64,000 bases of DNA from Amphiscolops sp. MND2022 (GCA_964187785.1 OZ076416.1:12090001-12154000); one strand, 5' to 3'; positions 1-52,920 are shown, numbered from the stretch's first letter. Program-made: numbers and translations. Notes: generated by a model from the sequence alone, not told the origin.

Positions 1-1
1 C

Positions 2-3000
2 GATACGGAAAGTTGTGAAGCTTACATCAGCCGGACTGTTGAACTACTGGCCAGCGTCGAGTCTACTGCTACAAACCCAAATAATGAGTTTTCTGATGAG
101 GCCAAAGCCAGTACAAGTTACCCGCTTGCAATCACTCCCGGGTTGAAAGAACTACTCCCCAATGAAGAAATGCCTGAAGGTGTCCCCAGAGTCGTGTTTT
201 TGGATAAGCCTGACGACAAAATCATCCCTACTGTAACAACCTCTGAGGGACAGAATGAACTAGTTATCCCTGACCGCGGTGTAGTAGTCACTCCCACTGC
301 TAGTACAGTTGTTCAACAGGAACAAACGGAGGAAGAAACAGCTGGAAGTATTTCAAATGATGAACAGCAGTCCAACCAGGTTCCCATGGACTACCGGTCC
401 CAAACTGATGAAGATACGTGTTTTGGAATGGAAACTGACACCGGTTCACTGGCGCGATCTACTCTCGCCCAAGCCCTATATCGCCCTGCTGAGGTCCAAA
501 ACATCACCTGTCCTGGAGGCTCTAGCAGTGAGTCTGTACCGTCAGAGGTACGTAAGGATCCTGGCCCAAACCTTTTGTCTGCTACTAGTAGGGTCATAAT
601 AAAACAGTGTTTTACTGAGACAAATCCAATCTGTCATGATCCTGGACATCCTGTCCTTGCGCTCAATCAAGAACAGATTACTAGCATCCTCAGGATCGTT
701 GCTGACGAAAGCGCAAAGGCTTCATTTGAGATGTTAAACAGTGTCGTTCAGCGGGCAAGTAAGCTGAATTTGGGCAGTAACACCAAATCTATGGCTCATC
801 GTTCCACTCATTCTGTCTCTGGGATAGATACTGACACGGATGTCGGTAGTGTGTCTGCTATTACATTTGACCCTCATAGGGACAATTCGAGCACCGGAGT
901 CACAAGCGAAGCAGAATCCCATCCAGACTTCCAGTCAAGCGTTACCTTACCTACGCCGCCTACGGTCGGGGATGCCGGTCTCGTAGACCCTGGGTCTAGA
1001 ACAGATTCACCAGCCATTTCTAGTCCTGGCACACAAACTCTTGCTGCTGTAAGAAAAGAAGCGATAAACGAGCAAAGGCAAACAGGTAAAAGGGTGACTG
1101 CTCGAATCAAGACTAGCGGACAAGGACGACCCAGGAGAAGAGTTGGTAGAGTCATGAAGGAGGAGTATTTCGAGTCTATGCCGTGGACCAGAGTTTTCGT
1201 TTCTGGTCAGGTTGACCCTAGATGGAACAAACACAAGATTTACTGTCAGATTTGCAAATGTAACGTTTCCATCCGAGCCAAGGGTCCTAAAGAGATCTTG
1301 CGACATTATGCTACTGAACGATATCTCCGAAAGGATCAGCGTTGGAGGTATGAATACCTCACGATTGAAGACCTCATGACCAAACGGCTGCGGTATCAAG
1401 TTAGAGGAAGGGATGGCAAAGTTCTCTCAAATTACCAATTGCAATTAGAACTACCCCATTTCATTGAGAGCGAATTGGTTGACATTGGCACTAAGCTGCC
1501 ATTCTATGATGACGCTATGGCTGGTAGAGACTATATGACCTCTTCTCCTCAAAACCGTGCCAGGATACAGATATCTGTGCTTGGGCATTTCCTTCCTTTG
1601 TCTGGGGACATCCAGGTCCTACGAGCGTCATGGCAACATATCGGGACAGTAGTCAACAATCAGGCAATCTTCAGTGACATAGACTGGGGTACTGCCAGGC
1701 ATTCAGTGAGTAATCTTCTGTTTTAACTTGGTTCTTTGCCTTTATACGAATGTAGTTTTCTGACTTTGACCAGATAGGCCGTCAATTGTAATCTTTTTCG
1801 CTACTACTTAGCGTTTTCTCACTATCTTTTACTCATTAAAGGTTTTGTTATAGGTGTTGTTTCATCACTTGTTTCAACAAATCATCACTATCCTTGGTAA
1901 CGAGATCCTCGCCGCAGGGCAGTATTCAGTAGAGTTTGAACCACAAGGGGTATTCTCACTACTCCATGTCCGATTTTGGAAAACTAACAGGCTGTGCCGC
2001 GTCTACTTGCTGAGGACTGGTAGGATCCATGGACAGACTTCCGCTGAGCTGCAACTAGTGGCTACACTCCTCGCTGCGATTTCCACTGAAGCTGATCTGG
2101 TCTGTTGTTCCGGTGCCACCCACAATCTTGTTCAGTTGCTAGATCGAGCGCCCTTTAGTCGACATGGTGTCCAACGACCAACGTTGTTCAATGAAATCAC
2201 CATCAAGAAACTGATGCATAAAGACAGTTACAGCGTGTTTGGACGAATTGATTTCTTTTCCGTCTTACAATACTTAGTCATTTGTCTTAGCGGCACCTTG
2301 CAGATGGAATGGACTTTGTTTACTCCAGAACTAACCAAGGTTAGACCTTTGGGATGTTCTCCTTTTATCAGCCTCAGTCCCTACCCTGCTTCAATGTAGT
2401 TTGCTTTCTAGGCAATTAAATCTGGCAAACTCGATGTGTCTGCAATTCCTTCGTTGTGCCAAGAGTTGATGGCCCACTGGAAATCAGTGACGGGATTTTT
2501 GTCCACTCACGCTGCTCAACAACAGATGCAGGGGGTCAGAAACCAGGTAGGTCGCGATTCTTCTTGTATACTCAGGGTCGATATTAGGCGTTCCTACTGC
2601 AGCTTTGTTTTCTTTCAGCCCCAAAACTTCAAGTGGTCTGTGATCCATGATGAATTTTTCCCTTGCCGACTTGAGCTTTCCGGAAAATTGGTGCGCGATT
2701 GTGAGTACTTTCATATAAATTTTTATTCGTAGAATTCTCTATTGGGACTGAGTAATTTGATATGGTATTTGGTATGGAATTTATCTGGTTTTCTTGCATC
2801 ACCCTATGAGTGTCCGAAGTTGCACTAGGTTTGATCATGTGATTGTACTGTGTGCTTAGCGCGTCTTCTGATCTCATAATGTCCTAATTTCCTGTTTCAG
2901 ATACTACCAACTTTTCTCTTAGTCTGAGTGGACGTCGAGACAGGGCTTTCTACTCCTTCCGGCAGCTCTGTTTGTACCTCCGTAAGTTGGCCAAACGCGT

Positions 3001-4045
3001 CGTCTTGCCTTCCGCTCTCCCAGAAGAGGATGAACTGGCCGAGATTTTGGATCTGGACGTTACGAAAGCACCAGCCTTGAGTGTGACTGTTTTCCTCAAT
3101 CGTATGAAGTTTGGTTCTAAATTGGACCAAGCTTATAAACTGAAGGCTGAACTAGAGCAACGTGACCAAAAAGGAGAAAAGACAAGTATTGCCGAGCTTA
3201 AGGAAAAGGCGAAAGAAGATTTCGGGAGATTAGCCAGAAGCTACACTACTCATTTGTTCAAAGAGACTCTAAGCCACTTCAACTTTACCACTAACATAGC
3301 TCAAGGATCGGGCAGCTTTGACCTTGAGATCATGTTGAAATCCCCTTTGACTTTGGCTACCCGGTGCTATAACAATTTGTTTACTACATTCAGACTGCGC
3401 AATTATTTCACCCTCGACCAGGAGTCTCAAGCCCAAGAGGAATATGTGTCCTTCATTGATGAAATGCGGCTGAAGTTCGCTGAGTTCGACCAACCTACAT
3501 TGTTAGTTCCTGATACGATTGATTTCCTTATGGAACAAACTACTCTAGCCACCCGTCCTCTTCTGTTGCAGAGTTTCAAGTTGGCCTGCCTTTGTTTGGA
3601 TGAGCAGTTTCGTCCTTTGACTCCAGTCAAGTTTAGTTCAATTAACACTGAAGATCCCACTAGTAAGTTGGTTGACGTCATCCTGCCGGTTCAGTCTTTC
3701 TTTAAGCATGTAGTCAATTCTATTGAGTCTGCTACTTCTGACGCTTCCATTTCCGAGTTCCTTGAATTGGAATCTTCCTTTGGTCGGAGTGCTTTAAGCG
3801 ACTCGTACAATCCGTGGACAGGAATGGACAATTTCGGAAGGACTACAATTCTGTCGAAGTTGGACCCTGGTAGCAAATTCAGGAGTGCAGCCGGAAAGGA
3901 AGGGGTCACTAGTTCTATCACCGTCCAGCAGTCTCCTAGTACTTTGCAATATTCCAAGAAGAATGTTCGTCCGACTACTCTGCTCTCTGACTCTGAAGTT
4001 TCCCAGGCTGCTAAAAGCCTACGCCAGTGCGGCAGTAAATACTAA
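2..4045 (+). CDS. Spliced gene (exons <2-1705, 1854-2339, 2412-2700, 2901-4045; at least 1207 aa): disordered N-terminus, C2H2/BED-like zinc finger, degenerate hAT-transposase-like body
   Basis: The frame is open from base 2. Three GT-AG introns join the ORF-track segments in frame: 1706-1853 (CA|GTGAGT...TTATAG|, phase 0), 2340-2411 (AAG|GTTAGA...TTTCTAG|, phase 0) and 2701-2900 (T|GTGAGT...CTAAT...TTTCAG|, phase 1). Zinc finger CQIC-x16-H-x5-(Y). YSVEFE...LHVRFW resembles the hAT FSL-x-x-DE...VRY region. Confidence 0.8.
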
Positions 4046-4194
4046 TTGTATATAGTGTACATATGTACACTTCTAAACTTTTGACTTTGTTGTAGTTTTT
4101 TGTATTTTTGTTTGTCTTTCATTATTGTATTTGTGTTGTAGTTGAGTCTAAAGTCAGATTGGTCTCAGAGTCAAAATAGTAAATGGGGACCAGC

Positions 4195-4200
4195 AATAAA
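4195..4200 (+). terminator. Putative polyadenylation signal of the antisense cargo gene
   Basis: AATAAA about 150 nt after the cargo stop codon, following a T-rich 3' UTR, and 9 nt from the pol stop codon on the other strand. Confidence 0.45.
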
Positions 4201-4209
4201 TGTATCTGG

Positions 4210-4929
4210 CTAATATCTGTATTCATCAGTGAAGTTGGGGATGGGGTTAGGTCGTAAGTTGTATTTTCCTCCCCTAGGGCTTTCAGTTTCTACAATCATA
4301 TCATCATTTTCACTTTCTAATACTGCGGGCACGATAGTATCGCTCCCCCCTGAAGAAGTTTTATCATCATGGAAAGATTGAGCATCATCTTCTTGTGATA
4401 TGGGGTTGGGAAAAATTTCGTCAGTCATCGTACGTCCAGTGGACCGAAGGTCCACAACTGTTAAAATTTGGTCAGGCTGTTCTACAGCTTCACTGGCATC
4501 ATTACTTTTAGTAGTTCGTTCATTGTTTTGATCGTAGGTCTCAGTACGATGATCAGCCTGTAGGTCGCCAAAATTGGTTTCCCATGTGATAACGTATAGA
4601 TCATCTTGAGAAATAACAATTTCTTCATCCGGCTGTAAGTTGCCTTCGGGTCGTTCGTCACGTAACGGGACGTTGGGTTCATATTTTCGGAGGCGAATGC
4701 GATGTAAAATTAGTGTTTTGTTAGAGTTGAGTTTGCGCATAATATAGTTTTCGTTAGGCAGAACTTGTTCGATGACATAGGGGCCTATCCATCTAAATTC
4801 TCTAAATGGGATTTTTGATCCTTGATGATCAGCTATAGGTTGCAGTATAAAACAATAATCATTTTGCTTTAAAGGCGAGGCTTTAGTTTTCCGGTCGTAA
4901 TATTCCTTATATTTAAAGTAGGATTGCAT
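4210..4929 (-). pseudogene. Integrase C-terminal region (GPY/F module), separated from the rest of pol by a frameshift in an A10 run near 4935
   Basis: WIGPYVIEQV is a GPY/F motif. TKKNIMQSYFKYKEYYDRK continues the upstream pol frame if one A is removed. Confidence 0.85.
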
Positions 4930-7540
4930 GATGTTTTTTTTTCGTATTATCTAGTAAAATTTGCGTTCGTCGTTGAAATTCTCCTGCAAAATCAGTCGTT
5001 GGTAAGATGGTAGGATTTGGATTGAGTCCTAATTTGTGATCGAGAATGTTGTATGGTATTCTGCCATGAAAAATCCTTGAAGGCTCACAGCCCAATGTCG
5101 AATGGTATGATGTATTGTAGTTTAGTACCGCTAAGGGTAAATATTTATGCCACTGACGTCTATACTCCCCTGAGGCCATTTTGAGATTTGTTTTGAGACT
5201 TGCATGAGTTCTCTCCAATTTCCCTATGGTCTGCGGGTGTTTTGTTGTCGCACAACGAATCTGAGTTCCCAGTATCTGCGCAATTTCAGCTACCAACTTC
5301 GAAGTGAATGCAGATCCTTTGTCGGTTATCAAAGTTGTCGGTAAAAAGGTGTGTTTGGTCATTATGTCAATAATAACCTTGGCCGTATTTGCTGCTGATG
5401 CGTCAGTGACCGGGTAGGCAAAAAGATATCGTGAGAAGACGTCCATAGCGGTAATAATATTCTCGTATCCGCCACTTGGCGGGAGGTTCGGTAAGAGGTC
5501 TATTTGCATTGCGTCTTCTGGACCTAAGGTCCATTCCGGTAGATTTTGTAGCTCAGGAGTTATCAATTCATTGCTGATTCTCTTGTCTTTAATGCATGTT
5601 TCGCATCCATTTACCCATTTGCGGACTAGTTTTGCTATCCCTGGGTAGTAATATTTACATCGTTTTTCTTGGAGCATCTTGGCAAAGCCTGGATGTCGAT
5701 TTGCCTTTCCGTGGAGTGGTTCGAGTAGTTCATTCACTAGGTGTTTAGGAAAGAGTATTTGATTGTATTTGACGTTTCCTGTTTCATCATAATATTGTCT
5801 GGTGATGATGTCGTTCTGATTGGACAGGCGGTCCAACTGACGTATGCAGTGTTGGTATCTAATATCTTGTATGAGAATTGTTTCAGAGTACTCTTCTTTT
5901 TGTAATTTGAGTTTACGTTGCTGTAAGATGACGTCGCTATTTTGTTCTATGGCTACAGTGTTGATGTTAGTCAATTTTTGGCAGATTGAAAGTCTTTGCG
6001 CGATGCTGTGATGGATGCTAAATTTTTCAAACGATATATCTGGTGACTGATGGGAGGGGTTTTCTCTTGCCAGTTGCTTTCGTTGCCAGATTTGTTCTTC
6101 AGTTTCATTGTCATCGTCAGTGTAGTATATTTGTTCTTCCTCGGCGACACCATCTGATTGGACATGGCGTTCAATTGGTGTTGTTGGTATATCTTCACGA
6201 ATTCTAATGATCAGCTTCTCTTTAGGAGAGATTTCCAGGGGGGACAGGTAGTCCGCGGCTGTGTTGTTCTTGCCAGGAATGTGGGCAATAGTGAAATTGA
6301 ATTGTATAACATAGTCACACGCGTTCCATAAGGATGGTGGAATGATTTTTGTTTGAAAAAATCTTGTGACTGACTTATTGTCCGTTAGTATGATCACCGG
6401 CTTTGGAGTCCCCCAGAAAATGTGTCCAAATTCTTTGAATGCAAAGAAAATTGCTAGGAATTCTCTGGCGTAAATGGACATCTTGAGTTGTGCGGGACTG
6501 AAAGTCTTGGAGCCGTAGGCAACCGGTGCGTATGCCTTCCTTGTTGATGTAAATTTCTCAAGCGGATCGTCCTCGATGAGAACTGCGTATCCGGCTGCCG
6601 TAAAGCTCGCATCAGTCATCAAGGCGATTTGCTTGTTGGGCAGAGGTTGTTTAAGTGCTAGTTCACAACATCGATCGAGTGCTTTGTTAATTTCGGAGAA
6701 TTTGTCCAATAGGTCCGGGGTTACCATGACCTTCTCGTCTTTAGTGAGCAATTTGAAAAATGGTGTTAGTCTTTCGGATAATCTCGGACTGTAATTTCGA
6801 TAATAATTTAAGAATCCCAGGTAGCGCTGTAATGCCTTCTTTGATTTCGTGAATTTTGTTTTTTCCAGGAAATTTTGGACTCGTGGTCGTTGTGGACGTA
6901 CGCCGTCCGGAGTGATGGTTCGACCCAGGAAGTCGATTTCCGTTGCTCCGAAATGGCACTTGTGCGTAGTGAGCTTCAAGCCGGCATGTCTAATGCATTG
7001 GAAAGTGGCCCGGAGATTTTTGATAAGTTGTTCTGCATCATTGGCGGCAATGCCAATATCATCGACGTATTGCGCGCATTGATCGGCTTTAATGACTTTG
7101 TCGAGGTATTCTCGCATGAAGCTGGAAAAGGCTGACAATGCACCGCTGGGGCCTTGGGCTAATCTGCGGTAGGCGAAAGTTCTGCTAACGAAATTGAACG
7201 CCAACATCTCAATGGACCGTTGGTCTGCCATTGGCAGGCAATGGTATGCTTGTGAACAGTCTAGTTTGCAAAAGAGTTTTTTGCCTGCCATGTGTTGAGC
7301 TGCATCACTTAGCGTACTGACAGGATGATTATTGTTGATATAGTCATCCGAAATGAGGTTGTTTGTTTTCCGAAGGTCGACTAATAATCGCAATTTACCA
7401 TTTGGTTTCTTTTGTGCAAAAATGGGACTGGCATATTTGGAGAATGGGAGTGTTGTGATGGTTCCATAGCGTTGTAGTAAAGCGAGTTCAACGAGGATGT
7501 CTTCCTTGAGGTTGATAGGTGTTGGTAAGCTTTGGCTATA
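4913..7540 (-). pseudogene. pol: pol: reverse transcriptase, RNase H, integrase zinc finger and DDE core
   Basis: KLDCSQAYH, QYVDD (RT catalytic), MTDAS and TDNK (RNase H), H-x6-H...CETC, DLLP...MDVFSRY, TDKGSAF and GKLERTH (integrase). The frame extends to about 7540 (YSQSLPTPINLKEDILVELALLQRYG); a 1-nt deletion separates it from the protease ORF. Confidence 0.95.
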
Positions 7541-8994
7541 GGCCGGGAATCGTCTTTCGGCGTAAGTTTAACCGTAAATTCCTCAATGCGTGTAATTTCA
7601 TGCGGTTGGAGCATTGAGTCTGTCCAGTCAAAGTTAGTCAGGAATCGTCGTTTGGACTCAGGGTCGTCCTGAGGATTTGATTTTTCAAGTTCCTGGAGGT
7701 TGAGTAGTTCCTCCAAAATGCGTTTTTGAATAGGCGTATGTTGTTGTGGGTCCCCTGGGTCTTCGGGAGTTGGGAACCAGTAATTATCTGGGAAATTATC
7801 TGGTTTAGAAGATTTAATCAAGCTGCTGACATAGATAGCAGCATTTTCAGGATCGTCCTGTAAGAGGTGCCATGTGGTCACTGGGTCAATGGGTTTAACG
7901 TATTTCATCTGCGCTGGAGTCATGACAGAGAAATTGGCGATGTGCGAACCTCTCTTGAGGGTATAAGGGTGGTCAGTGAAATTATTCAGAGGAATTTCAA
8001 CTTGACCTGCGGTCAGTGTGACCAATGCCGCACAAAAGGCGACGTCACCATCCTCAGTGAGTGCTTTACTCGGTTGAAGGTTACCAGTTACCGTGGTATC
8101 ATCATACATCTGGGATGTCAGTGAGATTATTTGTCTATCATTAGGGGGAATTGTAATATCCTCCTGAGTACATATAGGCTCCATGACGTTGGTGTACTTG
8201 TGATCCTCCGTTTTTAATTGCATGGAGAAAAACGGGAAATTTAGGACTCCCTGACGCATGTCCAGGATGGTATTGTTTCGTTGTAAGAACGAAAGGCCAA
8301 TCAATGGACTTGTGAGTTTTTCCATGACAATGAAGATTTCGTGAAATTCTATGTCGCCGACCTCAAACTTCAATTCGACAGTGCTCTTTGGAGTCTCTAG
8401 CTGCCCATTGGCTACCATTATTTGGAAATTTGGTGCTGGGCCCTCTTTGACAATTGACTGAGGGGCTAATAATCGGATTTTACGTAGATCAGATTCGGGG
8501 ATTGCGCTAGATAGGGCTCCCGTGTCTACAAGGCCATCTAATGTAAGTTCGCCAAAATCCATTGGAAAATAGAGCATTCGTCGTTTGTATTTGAGTCCCA
8601 GATTGGTAGTCAGCGGCACATAGTCTGGTTCGCCTAGTCTGGTGACCAGTGTATTTACGAATTGCGCCTCAACGGCCGTCGTCAAAGAGACCTGTTGGTC
8701 GAAATTTTTTAACGGATTGTCCTGGCGAAGTGGTGCTGGCAAGGCACAGGGATTGGGTTTTGTTTGCCAGGGATCAACTGACGCATTGGTCAAGGTTCCA
8801 TTGAGAACCTCGTCTATGGCGAGGCAATCAGGTTCGATTTCTAGCGGGGATTTGTTGAAGTTGGTATAAAAATATAGATGATGTGGATTGTAGAGGTGAT
8901 CATCCCAGTAGGGGTCAGTGCCGTAATCCGGGTCTGGATAATAGGGATTATAGTCTAGTATCTCCGGTAGAGGAATGATGGAGTATGAAGCGAG
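7541..8994 (-). pseudogene. pol N-terminus: aspartic protease followed by a degenerate dUTPase-like domain
   Basis: LVDTGALSSAI is a retropepsin D-T-G motif. Downstream ITIPPNDRQII...GQVEIPLNNFTDHPYTLKRGSHIANF resembles the dUTPase fold. The frame is open from about 8994. Confidence 0.85.
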
Positions 8995-9181
8995 TCAAGT
9001 CCGTTGGACCTAAGGTCCGAAGTACAAAATTGAGTAGGGGTGACTCTCATTTGCTGCTGCCAGTCAGCCGATGAGATGCCCCTAAGTGTTGAATAATATT
9101 CAGTGTAGAATATAGTAGCAGGGTCAGAAATTATATACTGTCTGACACGTAGTTTTTCATTAAATTGGAGTCGTGGCAAAT

Positions 9182-10888
9182 CTAGTTTTTTGGGTTTTTT
9201 AAAATAGAAGAAAGTTGCTTGTTGTTGGTATCATGTGAGTTGGTGGGCGCATCATCTTGTTTTGCGTCCTCCAATATGAGGTTTTTGGGCTTGAGGTGGG
9301 CTCCAGCGCCTTTCCAACATCGTTCCGCCGGGTGGTTTGTTTTGTCGCAAGTTGGACATTTTGGATATTCTTTTTTGTTATCCTGTCCGTCGTTGCGTCT
9401 TTGTTCCTCTTTTCGTTTGAGTTTTCGGCAGTCATCTTTGACGTGGCCAGGTTTTTTGCAGTAGTTGCAGGTGACATTGGGATCAATGCCGGAAATAAGG
9501 AGGCCAGTTCCCGGTCGTGTCGCTGTAGGGGCAGTAGACATTGTAGGTACAGTAATGTCGTCACCTGCCTCAAGTCCGTTGAGTTCTAGTTCGCGTTCCA
9601 AATGGGTAACGATCTCTTCAAATGAGGCGTTCTCAAGCCGTGCCATATTTACCGATCTCTTGAGTTTGGGGGGCAGTTTGGCGTATAAAAGGCTGTCGAT
9701 CATTGCTTGGGCATTTTCGTCAAACGCTTTTTCTGCTCCCTGGTTGAGTTCCTCAAGGAAATCTGGAAGTTTCATAGTGTTGGGGTCGAACACTAGTTTA
9801 TGCCATTTGTGTTTGGCAGTGGCTTGAGATTCCGGCCTGACGTACTTTCGTCGGAAGACCGCAAGGACGTCTTCCAGTGTCTGTCTATTGGCGGAGTTGA
9901 TATTACGAAAGGTTTGTAGTGCATTTTTACGTAAGAGGGAATGGAAGTGGTTAATCTTCATTGTTTCAGTCATTTCTGGTTGCATTTTTGTCATTGTATG
10001 AAAAAGATCTTCAAAAAGTTCAAATTTTTTAGATTTCCCGTCAAAGGTCAGTGTAGTTGTGCTGACAGGTCGTACCATGAGTGTTTGTGGGGTTTGCTTA
10101 TTGTTCATACCCGTTAAAACGTCAGCAAGGCGTGTGAGAGGGTCTCTAGCCGGGTTGGGACCAATAGCCTCCTGGTTTTGGGGTGACGTAGTAGGAGACA
10201 TAGGATCTACGGGGCCTTGGATTTGCGGGTTATCTCGGGACTGTGTGGGTCGTCCAGTGAGAAACTCAGGAACCATACGAGGGGTAGGGTTGGCTCCTGT
10301 CACCATGTCGTGATCATCCCTACGGTCCAATGAGCTTATTGAGCTGTCTCTAGAACGGGGAGAATTGTTTAAGTCTGACTGTACTCTATTTTGGGTATTC
10401 CCCCAAGCACTTTGGTGCTTTTTGCCTTCGGTGTTCCTGCTTAGTCTACTGGACCTTGAGTCCACATTTGTCCCTATCCCGCTATTTTGTCCTGACAATG
10501 AATTTTGGATTGAAGGAAGGATTGAATCATGAATTGCAGAATTAATAGACTCTGTGATTTGTGTGTCCAAATTCCTTTTCAGTTCATCCATTTTCCTATT
10601 CATTTGATAAGATATTTCCTCAGAAATGAGCCTATTGGTTTCCATAGTCATTTCACATCTATTTCTATCTTCTGAAGCTGATAGCGTCCTAAAATCCTCA
10701 CAATTTCTGACCATGTCGGTCCTTGTCCCATTAGACCTTGAGTCCACTTCTACATTTTCATTCAGATCGACGTCTGATTGATTTTCCGGGTAATTTCCCA
10801 ACATGACATTCATATTTTCAAGATCAGACATTACGTCTGATTGCCTTGACCGCTTTTCCCTTGCTTTTTGCATTCTTGTGGAAGGCAT
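9182..10888 (-). CDS. gag: Gag (568 aa) with two CX2CX4HX4C zinc knuckles
   Basis: Intact ORF with CNYCKKPGHVKDDC and CPTCDKTNHPAERC, located immediately upstream of pol. Confidence 0.92.
   Translation of the reverse strand: MPSTRMQKAREKRSRQSDVMSDLENMNVMLGNYPENQSDVDLNENVEVDSRSNGTRTDMVRNCEDFRTLSASEDRNRCEMTMETNRLISEEISYQMNRKMDELKRNLDTQITESINSAIHDSILPSIQNSLSGQNSGIGTNVDSRSSRLSRNTEGKKHQSAWGNTQNRVQSDLNNSPRSRDSSISSLDRRDDHDMVTGANPTPRMVPEFLTGRPTQSRDNPQIQGPVDPMSPTTSPQNQEAIGPNPARDPLTRLADVLTGMNNKQTPQTLMVRPVSTTTLTFDGKSKKFELFEDLFHTMTKMQPEMTETMKINHFHSLLRKNALQTFRNINSANRQTLEDVLAVFRRKYVRPESQATAKHKWHKLVFDPNTMKLPDFLEELNQGAEKAFDENAQAMIDSLLYAKLPPKLKRSVNMARLENASFEEIVTHLERELELNGLEAGDDITVPTMSTAPTATRPGTGLLISGIDPNVTCNYCKKPGHVKDDCRKLKRKEEQRRNDGQDNKKEYPKCPTCDKTNHPAERCWKGAGAHLKPKNLILEDAKQDDAPTNSHDTNNKQLSSILKNPKN
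9185..9200 (-). promoter_or_regulatory. Tandem -1 ribosomal frameshift slippery heptamers at the gag/pol junction
   Basis: TTA AAA AAC CCA AAA AAC TAG contains two A_AAA_AAC heptamers in the gag frame just before the stop. The -1 frame continues open (KLDLPRLQF...) to 8955. Confidence 0.7.
10294..10305 (-). promoter_or_regulatory. Primer binding site (TGGTGACAGGAG), tRNA-Leu-like, lying inside the gag ORF
   Basis: It follows the LTR terminus ...CACGACA directly. It matches 11 of the first 12 nt of the complement of the vertebrate-type tRNA-Leu(CAG) 3' end (TGGTGTCAGGAG), recalled from memory. Confidence 0.65.
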
Positions 10889-11894
10889 TTAAAATATTCA
10901 AGTCCAAACATTATTCTATTGTTTGCAAACAGTATTTCTATCAACAGAACTGAAAACAACAGATGAACAAAAATATTATTGGGAGAAAACAAACACGAAA
11001 CACGATTGGATTCCAAGTTTGGAAATGATTGAGAAACTGGAATTAATCACAATTGAAGTTGTAGTCTGTGTGTAGTATTTGAGAGAGATTGCCCCTGGGA
11101 CTTGCGATCCCTAAACATATAGTTGTGAAAGCATGACACGCAAAATTGCTGTTGTCACCTTACCAAAAATAGCAACTTCGCCCTAACGTCACAATGATGT
11201 TATGTGAGTAATTCTAAAATTAGCACCTATCTGCGGGCAAGTAGTGTCAAGTTCTAAAAATAGCATCGGGTAATAAACCAGTGGCCTAATAGTGCATCAA
11301 AGGACTAAATGGGGGGGGGGGTAAGGCGGTGAGCCTTTCATCTGAGATTTCATGTCGTTCCAAACTATTCTATTTTCATGGTAGCAAGCAACGCGTACAT
11401 GTAACGGACTGGTGGTCCAAAACAACTAAGCTGGACTAAATAGAAAATAACACACTGCAACGTGATTGGCTAGTTATCTAATGTACCACGCGTCTAAATT
11501 GACTAACGCTGAGTACAATTTGAACGCGTTTCCAGTTTACTGTACTGTTGCATCATCATTTACATTTCCATTACTAATCTAATTTCCAACTTTGTGGTTT
11601 ACATGACAAAGTATACAAATGAATATATAATCAGACTAAAATAGCATGTATTGTTAGGTTTAGGATAGTAATTGAACTATATGTCAACTGTAGGCAAGTA
11701 GACCTGTGGTCCATAATTTAATAAATCGTTGACTAAAGTAACTTATAAGTACAGTACATTCATAAGAGTTGTTTTAAGTAGACTAGCAGTTTCTGTGTAC
11801 TAAAGCGGCAATACTCCGGTAGGAAGATACATTTCACTAGCTTCATTTGGGGTGACTTGGTAGTTGTTTCCATCGCAGGCGACAGCCTGCGACA
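10306..11894 (-). repeat. 5' LTR (1589 bp), termini TGTCG...CGACA
   Basis: 5-bp inverted termini, followed by a TGG PBS. Both ends coincide with the ends of the homologous solo LTR at 58189-59586. Confidence 0.8.
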
Positions 11895-12033
11895 CAATAC
11901 AATACTGAACAACCCTGATTGTTACTATTAATTCAATGATGATTTCACTTGACCGCTTAACTGGGGGGTGGGGGTTAAATCGGTTAGGGGGTACTAACAT
12001 AACAGAAAAAAGCCCTGGTTCTGTCGTGTGCAG

Positions 12034-12214
12034 GCAGACCCAGAGACAAGCACGACGAGCAGCTGCATTTTCTCGTGACCAACTTCGGCTGGAACGTCGT
12101 CTCGCTCAAGAGCATGACCTTCCCCCTATTGGACGAGAAGTTCCTTTGCATCCACGACGATGACGTCATGCTCCACTCGGACGGGTCCATGCACGACCAC
12201 AACAGTCGCTTCAG
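12034..12214 (+). CDS. Isolated internal coding exon of an unidentified gene (RPRDKHDEQLHFLVTNFGWNVVSLKSMTFPLLDEKFLCIHDDDVMLHSDGSMHDHNSRF)
   Basis: Perfect TACTAAC branch point at 11992-11998, GTGTGCAG| acceptor and AG|GTCAGT donor. The frame is open; the segment is 56% GC with 51 of 59 codons ending in G/C, in AT-rich surroundings. Confidence 0.6.
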
Positions 12215-13620
12215 GTCAGTCGCTAACCATCTTGCTCATGATCTTCTCATCGCTAATTTATTCTTTTCGCGTGAGAGAAGAATGCTCAGAGATCAAATTG
12301 GGAAAAAAAGCGGGAAAAACATTGTCATTTTGATTTCGTTTGTTGCACTTTACCGTAGAAGAGACGGCTGGTTTTTTGAAAACTGTAGTCATGTCTCGAA
12401 TTTACTTTCAGTAAGTAAAGTTTTAACTTTTTTTGGGTAATCGAATTAATAAGAAAGTTATCTCTTCAGCAAAACTCTTCATCGAAAAATAATGCATTTT
12501 TAAACAGTTCAACGCTAGCTTGACATAAAAGGTTCCTCAGCTACTTCTCTCATGAAAAAGTCTAGGGTTAAGCCTAGGTTTTTAACAAGTTCTTTAACTT
12601 CAACAAGTTTTTTCACCCAAATTAGATTTCGTCAGAATGATAATTGAGTTCAAATTGAAAGATCGTTTCTAGAATTTTTTTGTTAAAATTTTCGAGTGAG
12701 GCTATATCGAATTTTAAAAAATGTTTTATAGGTTGCAGGGAAATTTTAAATTTTTTTTACAGCACCTTGAAATGCTGCCATCATTTTTCAAGTTGCCTGG
12801 TAATTTTGCAAAATTTTCCAGGCATGATCCCTGAAGTTTCCATGTTTAAAAAAATAGCCGGCATTTTTTGAAGGTCCTGTAAAACTCCGCGGTTTTCGAA
12901 TCTGAGCAGAGAAGCCAACTTGAGCGGACCTGTAGAAACCAAAAACTATTACACTGTGTCAGCGAATGCTTGAAATCGTCAGTGTTTGTTGTTCTATCTT
13001 TCCCTAAATTGCGTTTTTCTTTTTTTAAAGTTTGAATTGACATAATGATTATTGTTTTTCCCAAAGAAATTTGTTTTTAACACAAAATATGGACAAAAAA
13101 TATATAAACCTAGTTCTAAAAATCAACTTTTAACCTGAATCTTGAGATCAAATGAAATTGGTTTTGGATGTCAAGTTTTGTGTTTAGTGTATTTTTGTTG
13201 CAGACTGCACGAGACACGTGATAAACACATCACCCTAGAGAGTTACGTGGCGAGTGAGCACCACATTGGCTTCGATTCCAGAGGCGAACTTATCCCCCCA
13301 GGCAGAGATCATCAGAAATCTGATTAATCAAAATGATATGCCACAAATCACCGATTATGTTAAAAATTTTTCAAGTACATTCTCGCTGCCACTTGGCCTA
13401 GTTGTTAACGCGGATTTCTCGTCCTGGTGGAGACTGAGGTCTGACAAGCAGGGGTATGTGGGTTCGAGTCTCGCACTAAAGCAAAAAAAATATGTTTGCA
13501 AAAGTATATTTTTTCGGCACTATGTGACTTTTTTCACATTTTTTACAAAAACAAATTTCCTTCCTCGATTTTCAGCAAAGCGTTTTGCGAGCATAGATGG
13601 CCACTTTGAAAGACCAATAA

Positions 13621-14957
13621 AGGGCATATACAGTGTAGGACGCTTATAAGTTGCAAAAAAGACAATCAAAAATGAATCCCAAATCCACCACGCTTTCATC
13701 GTCTTGGTTCATCATAATGGGTTAATTCCAAAAACAGATTATCAATTAACACAAACACGTCCAAATTAAACATATGCTGATATCAAGATAATGGCGAACT
13801 ATAACAAGCCGGGACCGGCCCAAGTCGGCACCCCGCTCAAGTTTCCTAAATATGCAAAAAAAACACTATTTTAAACTTTCATCAATTTCTCAGTACCAAA
13901 AAATACCCCACGGGATGCGCATTTTATTTGGAAAACGTCTCAGCTCGCAAAACTACTTTTTCTTGAGCCGAAATCAGTTTAGTTTTCAGCACTATGCGAC
14001 TTAACGAAGTAAAATAAACCTTTTCTGATTTTCTTTTCACAGTTTTTGGCCTTTTGAGTTCTTTTTGTAACAGAAAATAGTTTCCCAAGTCTTCAGGGTG
14101 ACCTCATTGTTACTTTTTGATGCTGTGGAACTGATAAGTTTTCTGGATGATTGATTGTCTTTTTAGTCGGCGTTTTCGAAGAAAATCCCGACTCTTACAG
14201 TGGCTAGTTTTTTTCGTCAGTTCAACGCGTAACGTCCACTTTTTGTGCATTAAGGCAATTAATGTACATTTACCAGTTTTTACCATATGTACTTAGTACT
14301 TCATTTTCAACGCATCCAAAGCGTCTAACATGAGATAAAAAGCGTCCCCCTTTTACATTTTTCGGCACTATTCGACTTACCGGAAGCTTCGAAAAAAAAT
14401 TCAAAAAAAATTCTGAAATTTTTTTCTCAATTTTGAGTTTTTTGAGAGCTTTTGTTGTCTCCAGTTGTAGAAAAAGTCGTTTTCGAGTCTTTTTGAGCCT
14501 TATATATGGCGCCGACTTGGGCCGTTCCCGGTTTGTTTTCCTAAACTTTCATTTGGACAAATGGTACCACCCTGACTTTCATAACTGATTTCGGCTTGAG
14601 AAAAAGTTGTTTTGCGAGCTGAGACGTTTTCCAAAAAAAATGCGTGTCCCTTGGGGTCTTTTTCGGGACTGAGAAATTGATCGACAGCGAGAAATTGATG
14701 AAAGTTTAAAAAAGTATTTTTTTGCATATTTAGGGAACTTAGCGGAGTGCCGACTTGGGCCGGTCCCGGCTTGTTATAGTTCGCCATTATCTTGATTTCA
14801 GCATATGTTTAATTTGGACGTGTTTGTGTTATTTGATTATCTGTTTTTAGAATTAACCCATTATGATGAACCAAGACGATGAAAGCGTGGTGAATTCGGG
14901 ATTCATTTTTGATTGTAGTTTTTGCAACTTATTAGCGTCCTACACTGTGTATGCCCT
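13621..14957. repeat. Long inverted repeat (arms about 13621-13980 and 14582-14957) with a spacer of about 600 bp
   Basis: AGGGCATATACAGTGTAGGACGC... is the reverse complement of ...GCGTCCTACACTGTGTATGCCCT. Similarity continues for about 360 bp with scattered mismatches. Confidence 0.9.
14161..14539 (+). mobile_element. Helentron-like non-autonomous element (HINE/DINE-1 type)
   Basis: 5' TTTT-AGTCGGCG with internal inverted partner CCCGACT; core TTCGGCACT motif; 3' GCGCCGACT subTIR, GC hairpin and TTGTT end; T-rich flanks with no TSD. Confidence 0.7.
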
Positions 14958-15825
14958 GTATTTGTCTTTTCTTGAGAGTCGATTCAATGTATACCCATCG
15001 ATGATTTTTGAAAATTCATGGAAAAACATTCATGTTTAATGGATGTTTCTCAGTATTGCATTCATGTTGCATGGTATGGCCCATTGCGTGGCAAGCCATG
15101 AATCATGGATAAATTATGGATGGAAGGAAATCCATCACTGGCCAAATGGGGAATATTTTTTGCTTGAATTCTCGATAAGCAAATGCAAACAAACTTTTGA
15201 GATTTTAAGCAACTAATCTTTTTCAAAGGAGTGAAATTAAAATATAAAGAGCCGTTTGCGAAAAAGCCGTTTGCGTTAGTCGGCAGAATATCATATGTTA
15301 GCGGATGTAACAGTAGCTGGGATTCAGCTGTACATGTTATCGAATTTTGCGCTGGATCAAATATTTTTATGCTGGCAGAAGCAGAGGGAAGACCGAAGGG
15401 GTTTCTTCGGCACTACGCCACCTTTTTGATGATTTTAACTGATGGGCCCCTTTTGATTTTTAGCAGAAACCACGCGTTTTGCGAGCATAGTGTGCCCCGT
15501 AGCGTTTTTCGACACTATGCGACTTATCCTTGATTTTTCTGAATTTTTTTTGAGAAAAACCGTTTTTCGAGGTTTAATTGTGACATCTTTTTTTGTCCTG
15601 TGGGACTGATAAAAATTATCGCAATAATTGTGGAAAAACGTATGGAGCTTTTAGAAACATTTCTTTTGGTCAAAGGATGCTCCCTTTGCTTGTTGAAAAG
15701 TTTTCGGCTCAGAAAAAGCGTTTTTCAAACTTAAAGGTTCCCTTTCGAGTTTGTCGGCAGTATAAACTTAGTTTTCCTAAAAACAAAAGTTCGATTCGGG
15801 GAAAATTTCGAAAAATTCAATACAT

Positions 15826-16337
15826 GAAAACTCAACACAAAGTAAAAAACAGAAAACTAAACACAAGAAAACTCAACACAGAAAACACTAAACAAATTTA
15901 ATTAATTTTAGTTAACACCTCAATTGAGTTAATTTTCCGAAATCTAACTAATTGTTAAATCCGTATTATTTCCGTTTACACTTGGTCACAGTTGCGACTC
16001 AATTCAAAGACATAAAAAAACGTATAATTTCTTTTACACCTAGTCATGATTGCAACTTTTTCCTATATTAAACTGTTTTTCACGTTGAAACGTTGTTTAC
16101 ATTGGCCCAAACAATGAAACAAAACGATAGAAAAAGTTTAACCGCAAACACAGATATTTTAGAAGAGTTGCGTCAAATACATAAATTATGAGCAATACGA
16201 ACAAGGAATATAGATGTATTATATATACCACGATTAGTAAATGCTGAAAATGTGTTGAGTTTTCTGTGTTGAGTTTTCGTGTGTTGAGTTTTCTTGTGTT
16301 GAGTTTTCTGTGTTGAGTTTTCTTGTGTTGAACTTTC
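15826..16337. repeat. Two inverted arrays of a 14-15-bp unit (GAAAACTCAACACA at 15826-15895; six TGTGTTGAGTTTTC units at 16251-16337)
   Basis: The tandem units can be read directly, and the two arrays are reverse complements of each other. Confidence 0.85.
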
Positions 16338-51581: not shown

Positions 51582-52920
51582 CAGGGATAGGATTAAAATG
51601 TAGTTACATAAGACATGTGTCAATACACTTTTTCTCACAATTTTGAGTTCATACAGGTTAAACCTGCAATGTACATTTTCACAAGACAATGTGCAGCGAA
51701 GAGACAATTTTAGTTTGTTTACTTAGTAAACAAATATTAAATCAGTCACGAGACTGCTTTCTCTTCGTAGTGTTTGCTATAATACAATAACATTGCTTAT
51801 CATCTCACTTTCTTAATTTGTTTTCAATCCAAATGGTTCGACCTAAGCAAACGCCAACCGAAGCCATTTCAAAGCTTGAAGGTGGTCGCAAGGTTTGGGA
51901 ATTCATTCCCACAATTGAGAAGCTTCGTTGTAAGCCATGTGGGTTTATGATTAACTTTGATCGACGAGTTAAAACACGGGCAGAAGATCATATTAAGACT
52001 GAAAAACACCGCAATCATGTCCAGTTATCTCAGCGACAAACGGATATGGATTCGGTGCCTGACAAAAAGAACGAATTTTTTGCAGACTTAACAAAAGCTC
52101 TTGTAAAGTCAAATATTCCCCTCAACAAAGTCGAAAACCCCAATTTAAAATCATTTCTGGAAAAATGCACGAAGAAGGAGCTTCCATCGGAATCCACTCT
52201 TCGAAAAACATACTTGGAAGACGAAGGTTAAGAATGTTTTCAGGATATTATTCTGCGGGCTCATGGTAAAGATATTTATTTAATTATTGATGAGTGCACA
52301 GATGTACTTGGGCGTTATGTTCTTGCGGTTTTGGTTGGTGTTTTGGACATGCAAAACGAATCCAAACCAGTCCTGTTTGAAGTGGTGGAAATTGAGAGAG
52401 CAACAAGCGTCGCAATCAATGTTGTAAAATTAAGTAATATATTCGTTACAGTGCTGTTTATTACCCTACCCAAAAGTAATCCCCCATTCAAAGAATTCAA
52501 ATAAACTTATAATTTAGGAATGAAGCAAACCCATATTCAATTTTTTTAACCCTGGTTACTTTTAGTCAAGTTGTGAACAACGTGATGGGTCAACTTTACA
52601 ATGTTGTTATCGATTACGATCGTTTGAAGTATCTGATTACTGACGCAGCCCGATGTGATATGCAACTTCAAGTTTGCCCCGATTGTTAGCGTGGACGTGG
52701 AAAGGTGTTTTTCGCAGCTCACTTAGATTCTTAGTCCACAAAGACAACGACTACTTATAAATAACTTAAAACACTTTATGATATTTATGTGGAAAGACGC
52801 TGAATAAACATTTCAATTTTGTTTTCGAAAGTACATTTTAAAGGACATTTTTTTACTCAGAATAAGTACAACTAAAAGACGTTTTTTGCTATTTTTAAGT
52901 ACATTAAAATCCTATCTCTG
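51582..52920 (+). mobile_element. Internally deleted hAT DNA transposon (1339 bp)
   Basis: TIRs CAGGGATAGGATTAAAATGTA / CAGAGATAGGATTTTAATGTA and a perfect 8-bp TSD ATAATTAT on both sides. Confidence 0.95.
51833..52807 (+). pseudogene. hAT transposase pseudogene of the CGGBP1-like type
   Basis: CKPC-x16-H-x5-H finger, NIPLNKVENP...LPSESTLRKTYL, in-frame TAA at 52229, then IIDECTD, LITDAA and C-terminal APIVSVDVERCFS. The central region is deleted. Confidence 0.9.

Follow-up and report, generated by a model that had tools for sequence, protein, structure and literature searches.

We analyzed a 64,000-nucleotide (nt) stretch of the genome of Amphiscolops sp. MND2022 (C8:12090001-12154000; OZ076416.1, GCA_964187785.1), hereafter the window, whose left end falls inside an element belonging to a clade of ~16-kb Ty3/gypsy (Metaviridae) long terminal repeat (LTR) retrotransposons. 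Window positions 1-4045 are probably the larger part of an accessory gene of this clade, a gene that would be transcribed from its own promoter and spliced, would encode a nuclear accessory factor and would behave as an exchangeable cassette. A spliced antisense gene on a Gypsy-type element is unusual outside plants and retroviruses. We put forward more tentatively a broader reading, in which the clade represents a diversified group of 'complex' Ty3/gypsy elements in a non-plant genome, equipped with a shuffled, retrovirus-like module made up of a spliced antisense gene with an internal promoter and a nef-like open reading frame (ORF), and perhaps preserving a DNA-transposase relic.

An intron-bearing gene antisense to pol within a complete element

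The element that encloses positions 1-4045 is complete, lies on the minus strand and measures 15,676 bp (Table 1). Its two LTRs are 97.7% identical over 1586 bp (blastn of window 10305-11890 against C8), a difference of 2.3% in the window copy. A repeat scan of window positions 1-16000 found no second LTR copy, the partner being situated 2.2 kb left of the window, and no inverted repeat around the antisense gene, whose left end is itself outside the window. The first-pass annotation had placed the gene inside a Ty3/gypsy element and had proposed looking leftwards for a partner of the repeat at 10306-11894; both that partner and a target-site duplication (TSD) are there, with CAATA on either side. 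The gene sits wholly within these bounds, in the stretch that runs from the pol stop to the 3′ LTR, on the strand opposite to gag-pol. Pfam gives the order of domains on the minus strand as gag, protease, reverse transcriptase (RT), RNase H and integrase, and the element as a whole contains gag, pol, the intron-bearing antisense gene and, towards the 3′ LTR, an ORF in sense orientation, here named ORFx. The LTRs, the TSDs and the far-upstream region were read in the window copy only.

The antisense gene is composed of five exons of approximately 633 + 162 + 45 + 408 = 1248 codons (exons 4 and 5 counted together) and four GT-AG introns, with splice sites read directly from the window sequence and all phases matching. 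Its start is an ATG at position -193 (C8:12089807), outside the window on the left; of 21 other copies, 19 stay open for 57-80 more codons up to a conserved M-D-F-F-S-G-S context. The first-pass model, with three introns and at least 1207 codons, was reproduced in its arithmetic (568 + 162 + 96.3 + 380.7 codons) and in its phases, but it had missed a fourth intron, at 2547-2618. Its description of gene and pol as tail to tail, 165 bp apart, was also borne out, the two stops (4043-4045 and 4210-4212) being separated by 164 nt.

The gene adjoins gypsy pol in every copy examined

At least 16 near-full genomic copies of the 4.1-kb stretch are present at 88-95% identity, and more diverged sets match exon by exon only. 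With the protein of a distant exon 1 as query, a search returned 8062 first-look candidates in the genome, with many open exon-1 frames of 684-765 amino acids (aa). We examined 38 further copies: nine near and 18 diverged ones from this genome, nine loci from the ENA assembly ERZ25074608 and two from ERZ1742291. The antisense gene stands tail to tail with a gypsy pol in all 38, including lineages only 32-45% identical, and the pol partner is recognizable by integrase and RT or, at a contig end, by the integrase C-terminus. The same arrangement recurs on many chromosomes and in the two other assemblies. Because the stretch is multi-copy and linked to pol in every copy examined, as the first-pass annotation had proposed to check, the arrangement is far beyond chance. 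Identity of the ERZ1742291 lineage to sequences of this genome reaches only 31-39%, and thus the family is not limited to one assembly.

Comparison of the window with nine diverged copies by the Nei-Gojobori method (NG86) gave proportions of nonsynonymous differences (pN) of 0.07-0.39 in the exons of the antisense gene, against saturated proportions of synonymous differences (pS) of 0.63-0.90. Against the diverged copies from this genome, likewise with pS saturated, pN was 0.07-0.13 for exon 2 and 0.11-0.19 for the last exon. Selection across copies was another point that had been marked for follow-up, and these values indicate purifying selection on the antisense gene that has lasted long enough for synonymous sites to saturate.

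L023/L024 (C8:18.88 Mb) and L036 are tandem partial duplications in which a second copy of the gene (exons 2-5) follows a truncated pol; the units are ~4.5 kb apart and look like recombinant or tandem element arrays.

Introns drift in length while exons keep register

The introns of other copies vary in ways expected to break the frame if they were coding. Intron 1 ranges from 132 to 173 nt, is not frame-preserving, and retains GT..AG in most copies; in L018 it contains a stop. Intron 2 (68-80 nt) has GT..AG in most copies, including lineages 32-42% identical, and intron 4 measures 64-213 nt in other copies with GT..AG. Intron 3 is 66-76 nt long elsewhere, again with GT..AG, and in diverged copies the similarity breaks off over its length; since its length is most often 73 nt, its retention would shift the frame in those copies. 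Between the window and eight type-B copies the exons are 68-74% identical, whereas only 42% of intron 1 and 7% of intron 4 can be aligned. The exons keep register despite frame-breaking drift in intron length. The two most distant lineages, L037 (12668-12883) and L038 (3743-3958), lack intron 3 and have exons 3 and 4 contiguous, so this intron was gained or lost inside the element clade. The spliceosome does not recognize introns that the genomic RNA carries in antisense, and reverse transcription therefore copies them along, which explains how they persist in the element.

The accessory region as an exchangeable cassette

A 400-nt sliding comparison of the window with six copies (L029, L032, L028, L022, L025 and L018) revealed 90-98% identity over 4201-8800 and, in all six pairs, an abrupt drop to 65-75% left of ~4100, in the antisense gene. 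The 164-nt spacer between the two stops is 85% identical to that of type-B copies. For L029, pS relative to the window is 0.07-0.13 in protease and in RT-integrase and is saturated in the antisense gene. Two other copies, L015 and L016, have diverged uniformly, pol and antisense gene alike. These profiles locate the breakpoint of the mosaic in the spacer between pol and the antisense gene or just to its left. Near-identical pol genes stand beside anciently diverged alleles of the antisense gene, which indicates that recombination has carried the accessory module from one gag-pol backbone to another; the simplest route would be a template switch between RNAs packaged together.

Layout of the predicted protein

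Exon 1 was aligned across six full-length lineages and, separately, across 40 homologues. Its product has a variable, acidic, Ser-rich N-terminus that is presumably disordered, followed by a segment that we term domain A, a Ser/Thr/Pro-rich linker, a basic stretch, a finger and ~120 conserved residues ending in F-S-D-x-[DN]-W. Domain A has no Pfam match. Both Cys and the first His of the finger do not vary among the six full-length copies, and their conservation is at least 90% over the 40 members, 14 of which give a sub-threshold match to Pfam zf-C2H2_ZN292. The finger read in the first pass as CQIC-x16-H-x5-Y is indeed present in the window, although the family pattern ends in His rather than Tyr. 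Exon 2 contains the motifs [FY]S[VIL]EFE, VCxSG and SVFGR[IV]DFF, and exon 4 contains PQNFEWSV[IV]HDEFF. AlphaFold2 (AF2) was run on exons singly: exon 2 alone (predicted local distance difference test [pLDDT] score of 50) has the predicted secondary structure order b1-b2-b3-a1-b4-a2, and the last exon alone (pLDDT 47) is predicted to form helices only.

A model for the expression and role of the gene can be built on this layout. A short way upstream of the ATG is a non-coding block that hardly varies even among lineages in which synonymous sites are saturated. The block, which includes CCAAT-like and ACTTCC (ETS-like) motifs, may be the promoter and 5′ untranslated region of the antisense gene, possibly a bidirectional promoter between that gene and ORFx. 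The gene would be transcribed from this internal promoter of its own, and the transcript would be spliced and polyadenylated at the AATAAA at 4195. Its product would consist of a disordered acidic N-terminus, domain A, a stretch resembling a nuclear localization signal (NLS), a C2H2/BED-like finger and two further domains, one of alpha/beta type and, at the C-terminus, one that is helical. From this domain layout, the protein is most likely a nuclear, non-enzymatic, nucleic-acid-binding accessory factor, which may serve in regulating the transcription, silencing or integration of the element. Such a role would be comparable to that of the accessory genes of complex retroviruses and of the antisense ORFs of plant Retand/Grande elements.

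Several observations weigh against an accessory factor of this kind. The window copy itself is, by its sequence, non-functional: exon 1 has a premature stop at -10 to -8, and the finger departs from the family at one ligand, with Tyr in place of His at the last position; its exons 2-5 are open. A crude test found all five coding pieces open in only ~1 of 35 sampled copies. Transcription, splicing, the transcription start site and the polyadenylation site of the antisense gene are all predictions, and a search of public sequencing runs returned no RNA run; the four runs that contain the sequence are made up of short unitigs that look like DNA and are not joined across the predicted GT-AG introns, which is uninformative either way. 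Beyond the finger, neither Pfam nor PDB profiles gave a family, fold or structure match that would speak for DNA binding, and the conserved acidic residues (EFE in exon 2, the Asp of FGRIDFF and HDE in exon 4) leave room for an enzymatic role.

Database searches returned relatives without names. Pfam recognized no family in any exon of ~50 members, with E values up to 10 considered for single exons and for 40 exon-1 homologues, apart from the sub-threshold C2H2 finger, and profile searches against PDB sequences matched no chain, Hermes included. For the AF2 models, nothing above noise came from Foldseek against PDB or AFDB, from a shape search of the Atlas or from VIA-align (a wide search and a second look). 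Atlas features offered no usable match for exon 2 and only weak helical (CATCHR-like) leads for the last exon, for which 32 homologous ENA ORFs were found, all unnamed. A profile of exon 1 collected 798 clusters (50% identity level). The best 150 comprise only fragments, none longer than 734 aa, and none of ten clusters that were looked up has a name or an NCBI/UniRef record. The spliced gene model appears to be absent from public protein sets.

Origin of the gene

The first-pass annotation had derived the gene from a hAT transposase and had suggested a profile and structure comparison with hAT proteins such as Hermes. The comparison yielded nothing significant (hhalign, AF2 and PDB profiles), and the derivation is unconfirmed, with no support from Pfam, PDB profiles, hhalign or the low-confidence AF2 models. 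We nevertheless place just short of an even chance on the antisense gene being a captured hAT transposase, with a BED finger, an RNase-H-like core and a helical C-terminus, that lost catalysis and was kept as a DNA-binding factor. The finger spacing fits the BED/C2H2 type, and hhalign aligns the finger with that of a hAT fragment in the window itself, albeit without significance (P ~0.03). Against a DUF659-type profile, which was built from only seven sequences as the fragment has few homologues, P ranged from 0.03 to 0.7 and the finger alone was aligned. For the segment that begins at the finger and closes exon 1, almost every ESM-Atlas feature neighbor belongs to a hAT N-terminal family (DUF659, DBD_Tnp_Hermes, FAM200-ZBED5_RNase-like/DUF4371, ZBED1_RNase-like and zf-BED); the neighbors' scores of 0.82-0.86 lie under the tool's trust line of 0.9 and are leads only. 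At the level of fold, the modeled order of exon 2 would be RNase-H-like, the weak top Foldseek rows for this exon include Argonaute PIWI, EndoV and retroviral integrases, and, read by eye, [FY]S[VIL]EFE resembles the F-S-I-x-x-D-E-T-x-D strand of DUF4371-type hATs.

Sequence profiles stand against this derivation. Neither zf-BED, DUF659, DUF4371 nor Dimer_Tnp_hAT was detected in ~50 sequences (Pfam, E up to 1-10); zf-BED matches 0 of the 40 members, the PF05699 dimerization domain is missing from Pfam results for the last exons of five lineages, and the profile searches against PDB sequences were empty. Across the genome, none of the best 150 PF05699 matches falls in a copy of the antisense gene, and a DUF4371 search at E≤0.001 had no match. 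The D,D,E triad of hAT transposases is also missing, as the first position reads Glu and the canonical second Asp reads Ser or Asn in all lineages.

The hAT fragment of the window is a degraded DUF659-type transposase at 51791-52686 (+), spread over three frames that include a finger and the I-I-D-E-C-T-D and L-I-T-D-A-A strands. Near-identical copies exist elsewhere in the same assemblies, and its only named relative is an aphid DUF659 protein.

The gene may instead have had another source, such as a single transduction of a host zinc-finger gene, or a transposase lineage that is extinct or otherwise distinct from hAT, with only the C2H2 finger resembling hAT by convergence; we hold this possible, at somewhat under even chances. 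All sequence-profile and structure tests for hAT being negative speaks for it, as does the lack of detectable relatives for the last exon and domain A, and several introns are what a host gene taken up in antisense would typically show. However, no host paralogue outside the element turned up, every homologue examined adjoining gypsy pol; the database relatives are all unnamed ORF fragments; and the Atlas neighbors are consistently of hAT type rather than generic zinc-finger proteins.

It is improbable that the protein has remained enzymatic, as a nuclease or recombinase that uses its conserved Glu, Asp and His residues to give the element a second DNA-level activity instead of binding passively. 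The EFE strand, the Asp of SVFGRIDFF and the HDE of exon 4, all in the alpha/beta region, are near-invariant and purifying selection is strongest on exon 2, yet where a second catalytic Asp would be expected, after b4, all lineages have Ser or Asn, and no nuclease family was matched. Chance adjacency, whether of a host gene beside a gypsy insertion (rejected on copy number and LTR bounds) or of ORF pieces that do not form one gene, can be set aside with near certainty, as LTRs and a TSD enclose the gene, all 38 copies, which come from many chromosomes and include loci of two further assemblies, are alike, splice sites are conserved, and amino acids are kept while synonymous sites are saturated.

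Relation to known systems

Conserved antisense genes in LTR retrotransposons have so far come mainly from plants, where Retand, Grande and RIRE2 have, downstream of pol and ahead of the 3′ LTR, ORFs that are conserved and run in antisense (PMC7264820, PMC11963269). Grande gene23 uses its own upstream promoter, Retand proteins carry TRP28, some of the plant proteins are nuclear, and a regulatory role has been suggested; introns are unmentioned in these two papers, and the function of the plant genes is unknown (PMC7264820, PMC11963269). The present gene is like those of plant Retand/Tat elements, Grande (gene23) and RIRE2 (aORF-3R) in position, antisense strand, lineage-wide presence, age and proposed nuclear regulatory role. 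It differs in having neither TRP28 (PF04195) nor any other Pfam domain, in its much larger size (~1248 aa), in its four spliceosomal introns, in its non-plant genome and in being accompanied by a second, sense 3′ ORF. In our search of the literature, which covered a limited library, no Ty3/gypsy element from outside plants was described as having a gene of this kind, and no paper was found to cite either of the two ENA assemblies.

Retroviruses provide a second comparison. HBZ of human T-cell leukemia virus type 1 (HTLV-1) is a spliced antisense gene that is driven by the 3′ LTR and encodes a small, nuclear basic leucine zipper (bZIP) protein. HBZ and HTLV-2 APH-2 share with the present gene a location on the opposite strand 3′ of pol, splicing, nuclear action and coexisting 3′ sense genes, splicing and nuclear action being predictions here. 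Unlike HBZ, the present gene has an internal candidate promoter, with its ATG ~2 kb from the LTR, and encodes a zinc-finger protein of ~1250 aa in which Pfam finds no bZIP domain. The recombination of a 3′ module over similar gag-pol backbones is reminiscent of retroviral and errantiviral env or nef-type 3′ genes; in contrast to env, the module showed no sign of transmembrane segments or of a fusion protein, and what is exchanged is chiefly the antisense gene.

Among DNA transposons, hAT transposases and the domesticated ZBED, FAM200/ZBED5, GTF2IRD2 and DUF659/DUF4371 proteins resemble the predicted protein in an N-terminal C-x2-C...H-x5-H finger, an alpha/beta region with RNase-H-like strand order and a helical C-terminal part. 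Relative to these, the present gene is without detectable sequence or profile similarity, dimerization domain or second catalytic Asp, and it is borne by a retrotransposon, with no terminal inverted repeats (TIRs) around it in the scan of window positions 1-16000.

Accessory genes separate complex retroviruses from simple retroelements, and the present one is informative in being large, interrupted by four introns, strongly selected, represented by thousands of candidate copies, paired with a second 3′ ORF and subject to cassette exchange. It offers a tractable system for the role of such genes in a retroelement and for the passage of an intron-bearing gene through reverse transcription, and it bears on whether one class of mobile element recruits genes from another. 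For annotation, gene finders will call its exons as thousands of orphan ORFs.

Other features of the element and its surroundings

ORFx lies between the 5′ end of the antisense gene and the 3′ LTR. It crosses the putative polypurine tract (PPT), where a GGGGA run is all that stands ahead of the 3′ LTR, and enters the first 91 nt of that LTR (U3). It is 28-74% identical in six lineages and has no Pfam match. HIV nef overlaps the PPT and the start of U3, and ORFx resembles retroviral nef in this position. A tblastx comparison of the far-upstream region with L014 produced no match, and Rfam had no match on the window.

Table 1. Coordinates of the antisense gene, its predicted protein features and the enclosing element. 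Positions are those of the window unless prefixed C8 or L013.
Feature	Position	Strand	Remarks
Exon 1 (in-window part)	1-1705	+	Frame from base 2; ends at GTGAGT donor; ORF plus upstream extension in 21 copies
Intron 1	1706-1853	+	148 nt; GTGAGT..AG; phase 0
Exon 2	1854-2339	+	162 codons; most conserved piece
Intron 2	2340-2411	+	72 nt; GTTAGA..AG; phase 0
Exon 3	2412-2546	+	45 codons; conserved in 28 copies
Intron 3	2547-2618	+	72 nt; GTAGGT..AG; in frame in window copy only, and stop-free there
Exon 4	2619-2700	+	27 codons + 1 nt; 43-96% identical in 35/35 copies tested
Intron 4	2701-2900	+	200 nt; GTGAGT..AG; phase 1
Exon 5 (last)	2901-4045	+	380 codons + stop TAA at 4043-4045; 32 homologous ORFs
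Domain A (SRxIIKQCF...FEMLNS)	587-748	+	Columns kept across six lineages down to 40% identity
Basic stretch RPRRRVGR	1127-1150	+	Putatively NLS-like; just upstream of finger; conserved in alignments
C2H2, BED-like finger C-x2-C-x16-H-x5-H	1244-1324	+	Ligands conserved in alignments
Spacer	4046-4209	.	164 nt; between antisense-gene stop and pol stop, tail to tail
AATAAA, candidate polyadenylation signal of antisense gene	4195-4200	+	Motif scan; 150 nt past stop; putative function
Conserved non-coding block, ~130 nt	C8:12089638-12089765 (window -362 to -235)	.	40-170 nt upstream of ATG
ORFx	C8:12087710-12088576 (L013:4710-5576)	-	289 codons; between antisense-gene 5′ end and 3′ LTR; sense to element
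pol: RT, RNase H, integrase	4210-7393	-	Pfam RVT_1, RT_RNaseH, RT_RNaseH_2, Integrase_H2C2 and rve above threshold
Protease ORF	7381-8793	-	Pfam gag-asp_proteas, 33.5 bits
gag ORF	9182-10888	-	Pfam DUF1759 and zf-CCHC knuckle; ORF list
Primer-binding site (PBS)-like TGGTGACAGGAGCCAA	10290-10305	-	Abuts 5′ LTR; read from sequence
5′ LTR	10306-11894	-	1589 nt; TG..CA ends
3′ LTR	C8:12086219-12087801, left of window	-	1583 nt; TG..CA ends
TSD CAATA, 5 bp	11895-11899 and C8:12086214-12086218	.	Flanks read from sequence

The pol region comprises two ORFs that overlap at 4913-4929. RT, RNase H, H2C2 and rve are within 4913-7393, and the integrase C-terminus is in the ORF at 4210-4929 (-), which ends at the pol stop. 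Residues 207-291 of the protease ORF, between protease and RT, give a weak dUTPase-like match (PF00692, E = 0.0024, below cut-off). The gag open frame begins ~1 kb inside the 5′ LTR (10306-10888, -) and passes through the PBS.

Just to the right of the gypsy element are nested pairs of inverted repeats, 13609-13837/14741-14969 (229 nt, 94%) and 13881-13979/14583-14681 (99 nt, 90%). Their arms are ~0.6-0.9 kb apart, and they may belong to a foldback or TIR element.

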